Assembly (NCBI RefSeq): GCF_006345805.1 | Contig: NC_043023.1 | Span: 9,300,001-9,364,000 of the forward strand | Source: Octopus sinensis | Lineage: Eukaryota | Direction: 5' to 3' | Length of the DNA stretch: 64,000 bases | Part shown: positions 4,969-49,136 of the stretch, piece after piece | Numbering within the stretch: position 1 is the first letter of the stretch | How the letters are laid out: the number at the start of each line of letters is the position of its first letter | Notes under the pieces: model-generated | What the model saw: only the letters and a program-made list of their open reading frames with translations | The model's database searches: none | Told to the model about the DNA's origin: nothing | Translations under genes and position numbers: made by a program

Positions 4969-5040
4969 AGATCTATCCAATAATGCAATCGTGAAAATTG
5001 AAAATGGATCGTTTGCAAATCTTCCGAGATTATGGCGTTT
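4969..5040 (+). CDS. LRR exon E1: DLSNNAIVKIENGSFANLPRLWR(L)
   Basis: tctttcag|AGATCTATCC...TATGGCGTTT|gtaagt; 72 nt; phase 2-2. Confidence 0.92.
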
Positions 5041-5358
5041 GTAAGTTGAACAGTCTTGTTTATACTATATTCCTGAGTATATATTTCGTCAAATTTAATA
5101 TCTTTCCATCTTTCTTTCTTAACCTTCGTTTGCCCTTCTCTAACTCACATTATATATATCTCTCTCTATATATATGTATGTGAGTGTGTGAGTTGAGCGT
5201 GTTTGTGTGTGACGATGTGCGTTTACATTAGTCTATGCGTTCTACATCACTGTTTGGTATATTGTGAAAAGTGCGTATATAGTCATATGTATATTTATGC
5301 CTGAAACGTGTGGATAGATATATGGACCGTCAATGTTTCGTCTTGGGCAGGAGATACT

Positions 5359-6742
5359 AAACAATTCTGTGATGATATCACGTTGTAATTTTAACTCGAT
5401 AAATGAGCAAAAGCTACATTTATCAAAGGAAAAACGACAGAAACATCACGCAGAATGTCATAAAGGAATTAGAACCAGCGGAGAGATACATGTACTTATC
5501 GGTATTTGAAGTGGACATGATCAAATATTCAGTGATGAGGGAAAGGATCAGAATAGAATATTATATCAGGTTAAAAGCAATATTCAAGACAGAGCTGAAT
5601 GCAAGAAACAGAATCGAGGAGATCGGTACTTTTGCTATACCAGGCGTGACTTACAGTTTCAATATCATTAACTGGTCAATTATTGAAATATCTAATCTTG
5701 ACAGAAAAATACGAAAATTGTTGACCATGCGTAGAATGCACCACCCTAAACCAGATGTAGAACGATTTTACCTGCCAAGAAAAGAGGGTGGCCGTAATAT
5801 TTACAATTGGAATTAACAATTGAATTAACGATTGACCGAAACACCTACCAAAATAACTCTCATGACTGGATGTTAAAACTTATCTCAAAGCACGGAAACA
5901 AGAAGGTGTCATATAAAGTAACAAAAGATGCAAGGGAATATCTAAGTGAATTCCAAATACAACAAATCCCAGAGTTAGACGTACTAGAAACAAGCACAGA
6001 AAAAGCTAAGCGAATGAAAGTACATGCAAAGAATCTGACTTAGATATTCTTACAGATAAATGACAAAGAAAACAGCTCAATGGCAAATACCCAAAGAGAG
6101 CTAACGGTGCCGATGTGGATAAAGCCATTACCCATCAATGGTTAGTGTTTTCTAGCTTAAAATCAGAAACAGACGGATTTAATATAGCAGCTCAAGATCA
6201 AGGCCTACCTACAAGAAACTACCATATTAAAGAACGGCAGTCACCCAGCATGTCTTGTATGTAAACAACAAAATGAAACCATTGATCATGTTGTCTCCAT
6301 GTGCAGTCTTCTTGTGCATACAGAATATCTCAACAGGCATGATTGAGCAGCACATCATATTCACTGGTTAATTTGCAAAAACATAGACGTGCCACATGAT
6401 ACAATCTGTTGGGGACACGAACACACTCCAGTTCTTGAAGATGATCGCATTTTATCCTCTAGAACTTCGCCATTAAAAGTGACAGAAAGATAGATGCGAA
6501 TAGACCAGGCATTATATAGAAAAACTACAGGTAAAAACCATGCCTCGTCATTTAAAACTGTCCCAGTCGACAAAAATAGTATCTGTCAAAACCTACAAAA
6601 CTGAGCAAGTGTAAAGATCTTGAAATAGAAATTAGCAAAATGTGGAAGAAAAACAATGCCTGTTGTCATAGTTTCCCGAGGAATTATAGCAAAAGGCCTG
6701 AATCATAACTATCTCAGATACTAGGAAACATCAAAATGGCAG
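5359..6742 (+). mobile_element. Decayed 5'-truncated R4/Dong-like non-LTR retrotransposon (RT C-terminus, zinc-knuckle region, RLE endonuclease remnant)
   Basis: Frameshifted peptides KQFCDDITL..LDK.AKATFIKG, ELEPAERYMYL, ELNARNRIEEIGTFAIPGVTYSF, MHHPKPDVERFYLPRKEGGR and KDLEIEISKMW match R4-clade ORF motifs (from recall). Confidence 0.85.
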
Positions 6743-44837: not shown

Positions 44838-47800
44838 GTAAGTTGAACCAGTCTTGTTTATACTATATTCCTGAGTATATATTTCCTCAAATTTAATATC
44901 TTCCCATCTTTCTTTCTTACCCTTCTTTTGCCCTTCTCTAACTCACATTATATATCTCTCTCTATATATATGTATGTGAGTGTGTGTAAGTTGACCGTGT
45001 TTGTGTGTGACGATGTGTGTTTACATAAGTCTATGCGTTCTACATCACTGTTTGGTATATTGTGAAAAGTGCGTATATAGTCATATGTATATTTATGCCT
45101 GAAATGTGTGGATAAATATATAGTCCTTTAATGTTTCGTCTTGGGCAGGAGATATTAAACAATTCTGTGATGATATCACGTTGTAATTTTAACTCGATAA
45201 ATGAGCAAAAGCTACATTTATCAAAGGAAAAACGACAGAAACATCCCGCAGAATGTCATAAAGGAATTAGAACCAGAGGAGAGATACATGTACTTATCGG
45301 TATTTGAAATGAACATGATCAAATATTCAGTGATGAGGGAAAGGATCAGAATAGAATATTATATCAGGTTAAAAGCAATATTCAAGACAGAGCTGAATGC
45401 AAGAAACAGAATCGAGGAGATCGGTACTTTTGCTATACCAGGCGTGACTTACAGTTTCAATATCATTAACTGGTCAATTATTGAAATATCTAATCTTGAC
45501 AGAAAAATACGAAAATTGTTGACCATGCGTAGAATACACCACCCTAAACCAGATGTAGAACGATTTTACCTGCCAAGAAAAGAGGGTGGCCGTAATATTT
45601 ACAATTGGAATTAACAATGGAATTAACGATTTACCGAAACACCTACCAAAATAACTCTCATGACTGGATGTTAAAACTTGTCTCAAAGCACGAAAACAAG
45701 AAAGTGTCATACAAAGTAACAAAAGATGCAAAGGAATATCTAAGTGAATTCCAAATACAACAAATCCCAGAGTTAGACGTACTAGAAACAAGCACAGAAA
45801 AAGCTAAGCGAATGAAAGTACATGCAAAGAATCTGACTTAGATATTCTTACAGATAAATGAAAAAGAAAACATCTCAATGGCAAATACCCAAAGAGAGCT
45901 AATAGTACTGATGTGGATAAACCATTACCCATCAATGGTTAGTGTTTTCTAGCTTAAACTCAGACCTAGACAGATTTAATATAGCAGCTCAAGATCAAGA
46001 CCTACCTACAAGAAACTACCATATTAAAGAACGGCAGTCACCCAGCATGTCTTGTATGTAAACAACAAAATGAAACCATTGATCATGTTGTCTCCATGTG
46101 CAGTCTTCTTGTGCATACAGAATATCTGAACAAGCATGATTGAGCAGCACATCATATTCACTGGTTAATTTGCAAAAACATAGACGTGCCACATGATACA
46201 ATCTGTTGGGGACACGAACACACTCCAGTTCTTGAAGATGATCGCATTTTATCCTCTAGAACTTGTTCATACTATATTCTGAGTATATATTTCCTCAAAT
46301 TTAATACCTTTCCATCTTACTTTCTTAACCTTCGTTTGCTCTTCTCTTTCTCACATTATCTCTCTCTATATATATGTATGTATGTGAGTGTGTGTGAGTT
46401 GAGCGTGTTTGTGTGTGACGATGTGCGTTTACATTAGTCTCTGTGTTCTACATCACTGTTTGGTATATTGTGAAAAGTGCGTATATAGTCATATGTATAT
46501 TTATGCCTGAAATGTGTGGATAAATATATAGTCCTTTAATGTTTCGTCTTGGGCGGGAGATACTAAACAATTCTTTGATGATATCACGTTGCAATTTTAC
46601 CTCGATAAATGAGCAAAAGCTACATTTATCAAAGGAAAAACGACAGAAACATCCGGCAGAATGTCATAAAGGAATTAGAACCAGCGGAGAGATACATGTA
46701 CTTATCGGTATTTGAAGTGGACATGATCAAATATTCAGTGATGAGGGAAAGAATCAAAATAGAATATTATCGCAGGGTAAAAGCAATATTCAAAGCAGAG
46801 CTGAATACAAGAAACAGAATCGAAGTGATCAGTACCTATGCTGTACAAGTCGTGACTTACAGTTTCAATATCATTAACTGGTCAATTATTGAAATATGTA
46901 ATCTTGACAGAAAAATACGAAAATTGTTGATAATGCGTAGAATACACCACCCTAAACCAGATGTAGAACGATTTTACCTGCCAAGAAAAGAGGGTGGCCG
47001 TAACATTTACAACTGGAATTATATATTATATATACAGACGCAAATATATATACACATGTTCACAGACATATAGACAAACATAAATATATATATAGACGTA
47101 TATATGTACACACACACACACACAAACATATATATATATATATATAAAACGATTTTACAACTGCACGTTCCCACGGCTTTATCGATCGCATTCTTACCTA
47201 GAATCGATTTTTGTAATTTTTTCAAGATTTATGCACGCCCTCATAGTGTCGGTATCTTCATATCTATTTTGAGTGCAATCGGATGGAGGATGCCCAAGAT
47301 CCTAGAAGACACACACACACACACATACAGACAGAACGGATTTTATATAATAGACTAAAAAAATTTTTTTGGGGTTTGTCCATTCATAATAAATGAAAAT
47401 AATAAGTTCGACTGTAGGGTAACTACTTCAAGGAGGGACACCGGATTACGTCCAAGACGGATGCTTCACCTCAGACTGTAAAGGGAGGTAACTAAATTGA
47501 TTTTGGCAAATTTGTTTGTCACTCAACAGTAGTTGAAAAAGAAAATAGAAAATTGATGGACTGTGTATGAAATATGCATGCTTGGTGTTAAGGGAAGCAA
47601 CTCCTATCAGCGCCATATTGTCGATTGTGCAACCAAAGAAAAACGATTTCCCACGGCTTTATCGATCGCATTCTCACCTGGAATCGATTCTTGTAATTTT
47701 TTCAAGACATATGCACGCCCTGATACCGTCGGTATCTACATATCAAAATTGAGTGCATTTGGATGGAGGATGTCGGAGATCTGAGAAGTCACACAGACCC

Positions 47801-49064
47801 ATACACACGCACCCACACACGCATACATACTTTCATATACGTGTGTTCGTCTTTTAGTTTTTTTAGGAGCCAGTTGAACAAAACAGTGTGGTTTTTCAGT
47901 TTGCTGGAAATAACAGCCAAACCTCTCTCATATCATGGCCTTAATAGTTTTAAGGAAAGGAAAATATAGAATTAATGGTTTTGATTTAGTTCGGATCTAT
48001 GAAATTTAATATTATTTTAGCACAAACTCAAACACACAAATATAGACAGATTTAAGTATATATTTGTGTTCCCTCAAGATCACCTCTAAAAACCAATGTT
48101 GGTGTTACACACCCTGTAACATAGTGTTTCGGCAAAAGATACCGAGAGAATAAGTGCTAGTCTTTCAACAAATAAATGCTGATCTCGATTCGTTCGAATT
48201 AAGGCTCTAGCATGGACATTGTCAAATTACTGAAAGAAGTACGTGTATGAACGTGTTACATACACACACACACACACACACACACACACACACACACAAA
48301 CATATAGATATATAGACAAAAACAAATATATACATATATATATATATATATATTGGTATATGTGTGTATGTGTTTACGTATCTGTCTGGCGATTGATAGA
48401 TATATTGATAAAGTGAAAGATAGATAGGTAGGTACATAGATAGATAGATTGAGAGATAGATAGATGGATAGATAGATAGATAGGTAGATACATGTCTCCA
48501 GTTCTAGTTTAGTCTTCTTTGCCCTTTTTATCTCATTTATCAATAACTGCTCGTCGTTAATGTTATTCCTATTCTCATCCTTCTCTTTTGTTATAGTTTC
48601 AACTTTGTATATCAGCGTCATCCTCCTCCTCATCATCATTCCAAATATCAAGAGCATCATCAGTAAATATTGTCATCATAATCATAGTCTGCGTCCTTGT
48701 AGTGGTCGTCACCATTATCGTCATCATGATCATCGTCATGATCACCATCATCATCATCCTTATCAGTCATAATCTTAAACCACAATTGCAATGCCAGCAG
48801 ACCGAAACAACCTCATCACTACCAAATCCGTCACCGTCAATGCCCTCATCATAATAATTATCGCTTTCATCATCACTTAACACAATGCCATACATCTTCA
48901 TTATTATCTTCATAATCTTCACTTATCGTTTTCCTTATCGTCTTCACCAAATTGTCTCACTTCTACTTATTTTTCTTCTATTTCAGCAGCTAATTCATTG
49001 GACATAATATTTGAAATATATGACTAATCACTTCAATGTTTTTTCTTCATGAATTATCTTTCAG

Positions 49065-49136
49065 AGATCTATCCAATAATGCAATCGTGAAAATTGAAAA
49101 TGGATCTTTTGCAAATCTTTTGAGCTTAACATTTTT
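49065..49136 (+). CDS. LRR exon E9: DLSNNAIVKIENGSFANLLSLTF(L), nucleotide-identical to E8
   Basis: tctttcag|AGATCTATCC...AACATTTTT|gtaagt; 72 nt. Confidence 0.9.

Follow-up and report, generated by a model that had tools for sequence, protein, structure and literature searches.

We analysed a 64,000-nt window of Octopus sinensis DNA (NC_043023.1, positions 9,300,001 to 9,364,000, G+C content 36%), the whole stretch to which all positions below refer unless another locus is named. Between 4969 and 49136, on the + strand, it carries an array of nine leucine-rich repeat (LRR) exons, E1-E9, each 72 nt long and each encoding one 24-residue LRR with an identical core, and amino-acid variation among the nine is limited to codons 1, 4, 19, 20, 22 and 23. 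The exons and the genomic units that contain them are as follows.

4969-5040, + strand: E1, LRR exon DLSNNAIVKIENGSFANLPRLWR(L), bounded by AG and GTAAGT.
9702-9773, + strand: E2, FLSNN...PKLER(L), the sole copy with the synonymous AAC at codon 5.
17037-17108, + strand: E3, DLSRN...TSLTG(L), identical in sequence to E4.
24398-24469, + strand: E4, DLSRN...TSLTG(L), with flanks 0.2% off those of E3.
31861-31932, + strand: E5, ALSNN...LSLTF(L), the first among five 4.3-kb units of about 98.8% identity.
36161-36232, + strand: E6, YLSNN...PSLEY(L), with six private nonsynonymous differences in the exon.
40460-40531, + strand: E7, DLSNN...LSLTF(L), recognised with its splice sites.
44766-44837, + strand: E8, DLSNN...LSLTF(L), identical in sequence to E9.
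49065-49136, + strand: E9, DLSNN...LSLTF(L), recognised with its splice sites.
1-56443, + strand: tandem array of genomic units, detected by self-BLAST, one exon per unit.

Upstream of all nine copies stand a polypyrimidine tract and AG, and GTAAGT lies immediately downstream. The A that opens each exon completes a leucine codon begun by the TT that closes every copy, and all introns of the array share the same phase, with a codon split after its second base; any exon can therefore join any other in frame, and all nine are presumably spliced into one mRNA. The surrounding units measure 7.3-7.5 kb from the window start to E5, and 4.3-4.7 kb between E1 and E2 and from E5 to E9. Self-BLAST offsets of 4299, 4703 and 7364, among others, connect stretches of 91-98.8% identity, with units generally 91-94% identical and 98.8% identity reached among the five units E5 to E9. 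A tenth unit, after E9 (approximately 52.3-56.4 kb), is without the exon segment: 3961-4450 matches 52317-52777 and 5577-6745 then matches 52767-53897, about 1.1 kb including the exon having been deleted.

The peptide AIVKIENGSFANL, encoded by codons 6-18, occurs nine times on the + strand of the window. As an earlier note on this DNA had stated, it is the same in nine of nine exons save for a synonymous TCG/TCT difference at codon 14; a second synonymous change, which that note did not list, is the AAT/AAC difference at codon 5 of E2. The framework residues L2, N5 and L21 are likewise fixed, as it had claimed, and S3 and L24 also never vary. Its catalogue of residues at the variable positions was reproduced in full, with D/F/A/Y at codon 1, N/R at codon 4, P/T/L at codon 19, R/K/S at codon 20, W/E/T at codon 22 and R/G/F/Y at codon 23. 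At the nucleotide level the nine exons comprise seven haplotypes, and at the level of the variable residues they present the surface types PRLWR with D1, PKLER with F1, TSLTG with D1 and R4 (E3 and E4), PSLEY with Y1, and LSLTF with either D1 or A1 (E5, E7, E8 and E9). We also observed that an N-G-S glycosylation sequon at codons 12-14, in the loop region between strands, is invariant in every repeat (e.g. 5003-5011), and that P19T in E3 and E4 creates a second sequon, N-L-T, at codons 17-19 (17086-17094 and 24447-24455).

The spliced nine-exon product (215 aa) matches Pfam LRR_8 (E=1.2e-55) and LRR_4 (E=2.4e-28) with a 24-residue periodicity. AlphaFold2 predicts a regular solenoid with one β-strand per repeat (predicted local distance difference test, pLDDT, 91.2; predicted template modelling score, pTM, 0.87), whose best PDB matches are LRIG1, the Nogo receptor, LGR5, LRRTM2 and a repebody based on variable lymphocyte receptors (VLRs), with template modelling (TM) scores of 0.86-0.88 to LRIG1 and the Nogo receptor. 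In this model the domain is an extracellular LRR domain of the typical, 24-residue type (consensus LxxLxLxxNxIxxIxxxxFxxL). Pfam matches to HTH_3, HTH_19 and HTH_25 on the spliced peptide were disregarded as repeat-driven, no stretch passing alone. DSSP places the modelled strands at residues 23-25, 47-49 and onward, each strand spanning codon 23 and L24 of one repeat and codon 1 of the one after it. Because L24 points into the core between them, codons 23 and 1 (canonical positions 3 and 5) are, according to the model, the outward residues of the concave sheet, a face that is predicted to bind a ligand; codons 22 and 4 (canonical positions 2 and 8) adjoin the strand. This register agrees with the published five-residue pattern, in which five variable, solvent-exposed residues per repeat of the β-strand/β-turn region form the concave face of LRR proteins (PMC3138743). 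Four of the six variable codons fall within the five a-priori xxLxLxx positions (hypergeometric P 0.0065, or 0.036 without framework codons), and these four, codons 23, 1, 22 and 4, are neither buried nor convex in the AlphaFold model.

To place the array in a gene, we compared it with proteins and related octopus loci. The closest protein, and the sole close database match, is an Octopus vulgaris model of 190 aa, named for IGFALS, with 70% identity. At the nucleotide level, long stretches of the window share 90-94% identity with an O. vulgaris locus (L001) and an O. sinensis locus (L002), an O. bimaculoides locus (L004) resembles it only in patches, and it is the same locus as none of them. 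In L001 (OX597842.1, a 98-kb locus) an LRRNT exon is accompanied by the 72-nt exon in eight copies (V1-V8), a further LRR exon and an LRRCT exon, with an 899-aa GPS+7tm_2 model downstream. Since the start codon of that model lies in frame inside the LRRCT exon, L001 is, to judge from its sequence, evidently one gene annotated as two. Within this region (L001, 10001-117623), the 'IGFALS' model itself takes the LRRNT exon, five of the eight LRR copies (V3-V5 are skipped) and a doubtful terminal exon. The O. bimaculoides paralogue L004 shows the same order of 72-nt LRR exons, LRRCT plus Cys-rich region, and GPS/7tm_2; a second protein search with the LRRCT/Cys-rich query returned four octopus fragments only, without the 899-aa G protein-coupled receptor (GPCR) model. 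Ritschard et al. 2019 describe an octopus-specific, co-localised expansion of adhesion GPCRs ('group 3') with signatures of positive selection and with LRRs in five of 22 members; for some members, expression is reported to be highest in the axial nerve cord, suckers and skin (PMC6408891). By locus homology, the window most probably encodes the N-terminal arm (ectodomain) of an adhesion GPCR from this octopus-specific tandem expansion. Four of the eight O. vulgaris copies have lost the NGS sequon, two having NGW and two NRW in its place.

We next used the introns as a neutral yardstick, in an alignment of the nine units that covered the exon with 1.0 kb of upstream and 1.4 kb of downstream sequence. 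The minimum number of changes per site was 0.319 in the exon and 0.128 in the introns, and nucleotide diversity (π) was 0.106 and 0.045, respectively. The excess is strongly localised. Codons 19-23 (15 nt) require 16 minimum changes, compared with a mean of 1.87 and a maximum of 10 in 2204 intron windows of 15 nt (Poisson P = 2.7e-10 at the intron rate), which bears out the expectation that the variable codons diverge far more than flanking intron; codons 1-4 require five changes, a number that 4.5% of intron windows equal or surpass. Differences between copies at the hypervariable codons run at roughly nine times the intron rate, and nearly all of them are nonsynonymous and often multi-nucleotide. 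The 42-nt core shows two changes, both synonymous, and two or fewer are seen in 20% of intron windows of the same size. The invariance of the core mostly reflects young duplications rather than special constraint, and the core varies in the related array.

A local mutational hot spot is an unlikely source of this excess, as the synonymous sites beside the hypervariable codons are quiet across 18 copies from the window and the related arrays (codon 21 is TTA in 17 of 18 and codon 18 is CTT in 17 of 18), a quietness that also argues against patches that are merely much older than their surroundings. CpG hypermutability could give CCG to CCA or CTG and GTG to ATG, but cannot give TGG/GAA/ACA or CGT/GGA/TTT/TAT.

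Codon-based likelihood tests were carried out with our own Goldman-Yang implementation of models M1a/M2a and M7/M8. For the seven window haplotypes, M2a improved on M1a with a likelihood-ratio test statistic (LRT) of 13.3-15.9 (p 0.0004-0.0013 across three codon-frequency settings), assigning a ratio of nonsynonymous to synonymous rates (dN/dS, ω) of ω2 ~7-12 to 20-26% of codons. M8 likewise improved on M7 (LRT 13.8, p 0.001, ωs ~9.8 on ~20% of codons). Site-wise dN/dS exceeds 1 at codons 1, 19, 22 and 23, each with P>0.95 under M2a; codons 4 and 20 join them only under equal codon frequencies. In a parametric bootstrap under the fitted M1a, one of 200 data sets reached the observed LRT of 13.7 (95th percentile 3.6, 99th 9.0). 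The same comparison on V1-V8 together with S1, the independent O. vulgaris/O. sinensis array, gave an LRT of 20.4 (p=3.6e-5, ω 8.5) with selected sites 8, 22 and 23, and all 16 haplotypes combined gave 20.1 (p=4.2e-5, ω 5.3) with the same sites 8, 22 and 23. In the related array the core is itself variable, with V8 replaced by E, M or G, SFA by WLP or WFA, and with N12K, G13R and A6T.

These results make it highly improbable that the pattern stems from relaxed constraint alone, with exposed non-consensus positions drifting, the framework conserved and no adaptive diversification. Such drift would be in keeping with a whole-exon pairwise ratio of nonsynonymous to synonymous differences (pN/pS) of about 1, with a core whose invariance is not significant against the intron, and with the fact that any LRR consensus is itself defined by repeats varying at the positions outside it. 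Drift cannot, however, surpass the neutral rate, and codons 19-23 show 16 changes where 1.9 are predicted; the nearly neutral models fit less well than M2a and M8; and of the 11 other exposed non-framework codons, nine are without any amino-acid change and the remaining two, codons 19 and 20, bear just four of the 18 nonsynonymous steps (binomial P 6.6e-5).

The units are gene-conversion mosaics. Along 1.6 kb, the nearest neighbour of E1 switches five times: E3/E4 comes first, followed by E7/E8, by V1 at the exon itself, by V4/V5 and finally by E5-E9 with 0% divergence. High unit identity and this switching along the flanks bear out homogenisation of the repeats by exchange. The E1 exon is identical at 71 of 72 positions to V1, the first LRR exon of the O. 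vulgaris locus (L001:15682), both encoding PRLWR, while their ±800-bp flanks differ by 8.6%. The likeness of E1 to V1 (4169-5840 compared with L001) may indicate that the repeat packing against the N-terminal cap is individually conserved. E6 presents a second case. Its unit is otherwise 99.6-99.9% like its neighbours, with private changes of about 0.1%, and yet six private differences, all nonsynonymous and at codons 1, 19, 22 and 23, lie within the exon and one more lies 15 nt downstream, compared with just five in the remaining 4.29 kb (Poisson P 4.5e-10 for clustering).

Such mosaics raise the alternative that the array is a patchwork without ongoing positive selection, in which old variants were borrowed by short conversion tracts from diverged paralogous LRR exons, and in which the excess over the intron arises as introns homogenise while imported patches persist by chance. 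The strongly mosaic flanks, the concentration of six plus one private differences of E6 within 87 nt, the presence of its Y1 and P.LEY states in V4, V7 and V6, and the match of the E1 exon to V1 despite diverged flanks are all what borrowing would produce. We nevertheless regard this alternative as unlikely. An exact donor for any window patch was not found in L001 or L002, and the donors offered by the related array differ in the core (V8E, SFA to WLP or WFA), a kind of variant seen in none of the nine exons. Neutral patches would also bring synonymous differences, and the adjacent synonymous sites are near-invariant. Finally, the same codons are concentrated in an independent array, which still requires selection at the level of the family.

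A further alternative is that the protein does not use the array, most copies being unspliced pseudo-exons or the product of assembly over-expansion, in which case the pattern would be uninformative on a binding surface. Five 4.3-kb units of 98.8% identity are indeed hard to assemble, the O. vulgaris gene model takes only five of the eight copies available to it, and the exact exon combination of the window is absent from the proteins of a 5.8-billion-sequence database. Set against this are nine of nine copies that retain the reading frame, polypyrimidine tract, AG and GTAAGT, differences that are nonsynonymous and position-specific in a manner unexpected for idle DNA, and private substitutions scattered between units, as in real copies. 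We consider disuse of the array improbable.

Together, these data lead us to favour, as reasonably probable, a single account in which the LRR array grew by duplication and exchange of units, with selection for varied groove residues. The window would represent the middle of the ectodomain-coding part of a gene for an extracellular protein with 'typical' 24-residue LRRs, whose solenoid would have been lengthened by tandem duplication of genomic units of 4.3-7.4 kb. With each unit contributing one 72-nt exon, gain or loss of a unit would keep the frame and add or remove one turn. The units would continue to swap sequence by unequal crossing-over and gene conversion, an exchange that would keep introns, splice sites and the exon's structural portion near-identical. 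Against that homogenisation, codons 23, 1, 22 and 19 diverge, as do codons 4 and 20 more weakly; selection would favour, or shield from homogenisation, different residues on successive rungs of a putative ligand-binding groove. Some of this variety would have been shifted between copies as short conversion patches. A picture of concerted evolution in which diversity is maintained and shuffled fits the process better than a plain acceleration of point substitution. Selection would still be needed despite conversion, because the known relatives would import core differences too, of which none are seen, and because variants concentrate on the same codons in the independent array.

Several observations weigh against this account. 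The mosaic structure of the units means that the single tree assumed by the codon models is violated, that trees are unreliable and that some 'substitutions' are imported; the multi-nucleotide differences violate the further assumption of single-nucleotide steps. For E6, one short conversion from a diverged copy is more plausible than six selected mutations, given that both Y1 and P.LEY are also present among the O. vulgaris copies. Part of the diversity signal is therefore imported patches, not independent substitutions, which weakens tree-based dN/dS, and the whole-exon pN/pS near 1 is uninformative. The nine exons amount to just five surface types, with E5, E7, E8 and E9 entirely undiverged at the codons of LSLTF. 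Codons 19-20 (canonical positions 23-24) lie in the loop before the strand, off the concave face, the concave position 7 (S3) is invariant, and the convex-side codons 8 and 12-16 also vary in the related array. No LRRNT or LRRCT was detected in the window by splice-aware scan and tblastn, the GPS/seven-transmembrane (7TM) part is likewise absent within it, and, as noted, the database search returned no protein with its exon combination. The earlier note's central claims accordingly stand in part. Its placement of the substitutions on the predicted binding face holds for codons 22, 23, 1 and 4 and fails for the loop codons 19 and 20; S3, on the concave face, is fixed. Its reading of diversifying selection on a binding surface gains from ω>1, the excess over the intron and the strand register, and is qualified by the imported patches, by codons 19-20 and by the fact that the comparison is among repeats of one protein, not alleles or orthologues.

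We also considered an extension in which the array serves as an exon bank, with subsets of exons included by cassette or mutually exclusive splicing to yield many ectodomain isoforms of one adhesion GPCR. Neurons or sucker cells might then include different subsets, and copy number and patches might turn over rapidly between individuals. Such splicing is conceivable because all exons are 72 nt long, share one phase and identical splice signals, and differ in their groove residues; the O. vulgaris model that skips three of eight copies is compatible with it, but is a gene prediction only. We regard this extension as doubtful at best. If true, it would constitute a cephalopod counterpart to the diversity of Dscam1 or the clustered protocadherins.

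The favoured account, growth by duplication and exchange with selection on groove residues, can be set beside several known systems. The earlier note had called the pattern VLR-like. VLR genes of lamprey and hagfish are germline-incomplete and are completed somatically by copying flanking cassettes, which are without splice sites and lie in both orientations, and this assembly takes place in lymphocytes by a cytidine-deaminase-dependent copy-choice process. VLRs and the octopus array share a typical 24-residue LRR solenoid with variation on the concave β-sheet, and a VLR-derived repebody is among the structural matches. Unlike VLRs, the array consists of nine same-strand exons with canonical splice sites, its variation is germline and evolutionary, and it belongs to a mollusc. 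The likeness thus extends to which positions vary and, with same-strand germline exons, canonical splice sites and no donor cassettes, to nothing else; nine + strand exons with AG, GTAAGT and a common phase are not those of a VLR-type or antibody-like system.

Plant LRR resistance and receptor proteins, and other LRR receptors such as Toll-like receptors (TLRs), have hypervariable xxLxLxx residues; they share the fold and the same five exposed positions per repeat (PMC3138743), and combine ω>1 at those positions with exchange among tandem copies, as here. What is compared there is alleles or paralogous genes, whose LRRs usually all lie in a single exon, whereas the octopus array places tandem single-LRR exons within one gene; it further differs from the plant/TLR type in its invariant position 7 and in having two variable codons in the pre-strand loop. 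The zinc-finger array of PRDM9 undergoes concerted evolution with positive selection at contact residues (PMC2779102). There, as in the octopus array, repeats are near-identical except at ligand-contact codons (predicted in octopus), copy number shifts by unequal exchange, and homogenisation and diversification act together; ω>1 at the predicted contact codons was found here as well (M2a/M8: 1, 19, 22, 23), under a model that recombination violates. PRDM9 repeats are 84-bp minisatellite units in one DNA-binding exon, in contrast to octopus repeats that each form their own exon in a 4-7 kb unit. More generally, newly duplicated protein repeats diverge 'horizontally' faster than expected, through relaxed and positive selection (Persi, Wolf & Koonin 2016; PMC5120217). 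That pattern is a general statistic, and in the octopus array the sites are resolved and mappable to a structural face, with introns for comparison. With regard to octopus group 3 adhesion GPCRs, the same LRR exons lie directly upstream of GPS+7tm_2 models at related loci; the accessible part of the study of that group treats whole genes and does not describe an intragenic exon array or site-specific hypervariability (PMC6408891).

Diversifying selection on concave LRR residues and fast divergence of new repeats are well-established principles, and the array bears a clear, if familiar, mark of selection for variety in a predicted binding surface. Its interest lies in the setting. Octopuses have expanded both adhesion GPCRs and protocadherins, and this locus presents, at single-codon resolution, one receptor arm being lengthened and re-specified, with whole-turn exon duplication, homogenisation by exchange and selection on just three to six groove residues per turn all in play. 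The locus amounts to a compact natural experiment, with its own introns as the neutral yardstick, for locating a ligand-contact surface, and it raises the question of splice-generated receptor diversity.

Two further features recur in the units. Microsatellites, namely (TG)n, (AC)n and (GATA)n, are found in each unit at distances of 570-1550 nt upstream of the exon and are possible substrates for unequal exchange. The introns also contain open reading frames (ORFs) of 154-160 aa ending in ...RRIHHPKPDVERFYLPRKEGGRN, two copies per 4.3-kb unit, each pair forming a 760-bp internal repeat that starts 15 nt and about 1.4 kb after the exon. We take these ORFs to resemble the C-terminal part of non-LTR (long terminal repeat) retrotransposon ORF2, a resemblance unconfirmed by Pfam, which gave no match to them; Rfam gave no matches.

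30306-30374, 31055-31101 and 31188-31287, and again e.g. 35356-35402 and 35487-35586: microsatellites.
32226-32708, 33703-34167, 38004-38468, 42303-42767, 46609-47073 and 50908-51372: intron ORFs.

A six-frame LRR motif scan of the window returned nothing beyond the nine exons, the motif being divided between exons. Two exons of a second subtype were recovered by tblastn and a splice-aware scan.

59994-60065, + strand: E10, second-subtype LRR exon NLQNNKISTMEQGTFRNLSGLEY, found by tblastn with O. sinensis LRRs and inspection of splice sites.
62219-62290, + strand: E11, second-subtype LRR exon NLGNNKISTIEQGTFRNLSNIKY, found by tblastn and the splice-aware scan.

E10 has the same length and phase as E1-E9. 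It differs from E11 at seven positions, all nonsynonymous, and the flanks of the two are 82.7% identical; they sit in a 2.2-kb duplicated unit in which the exon is less diverged than its flanks.

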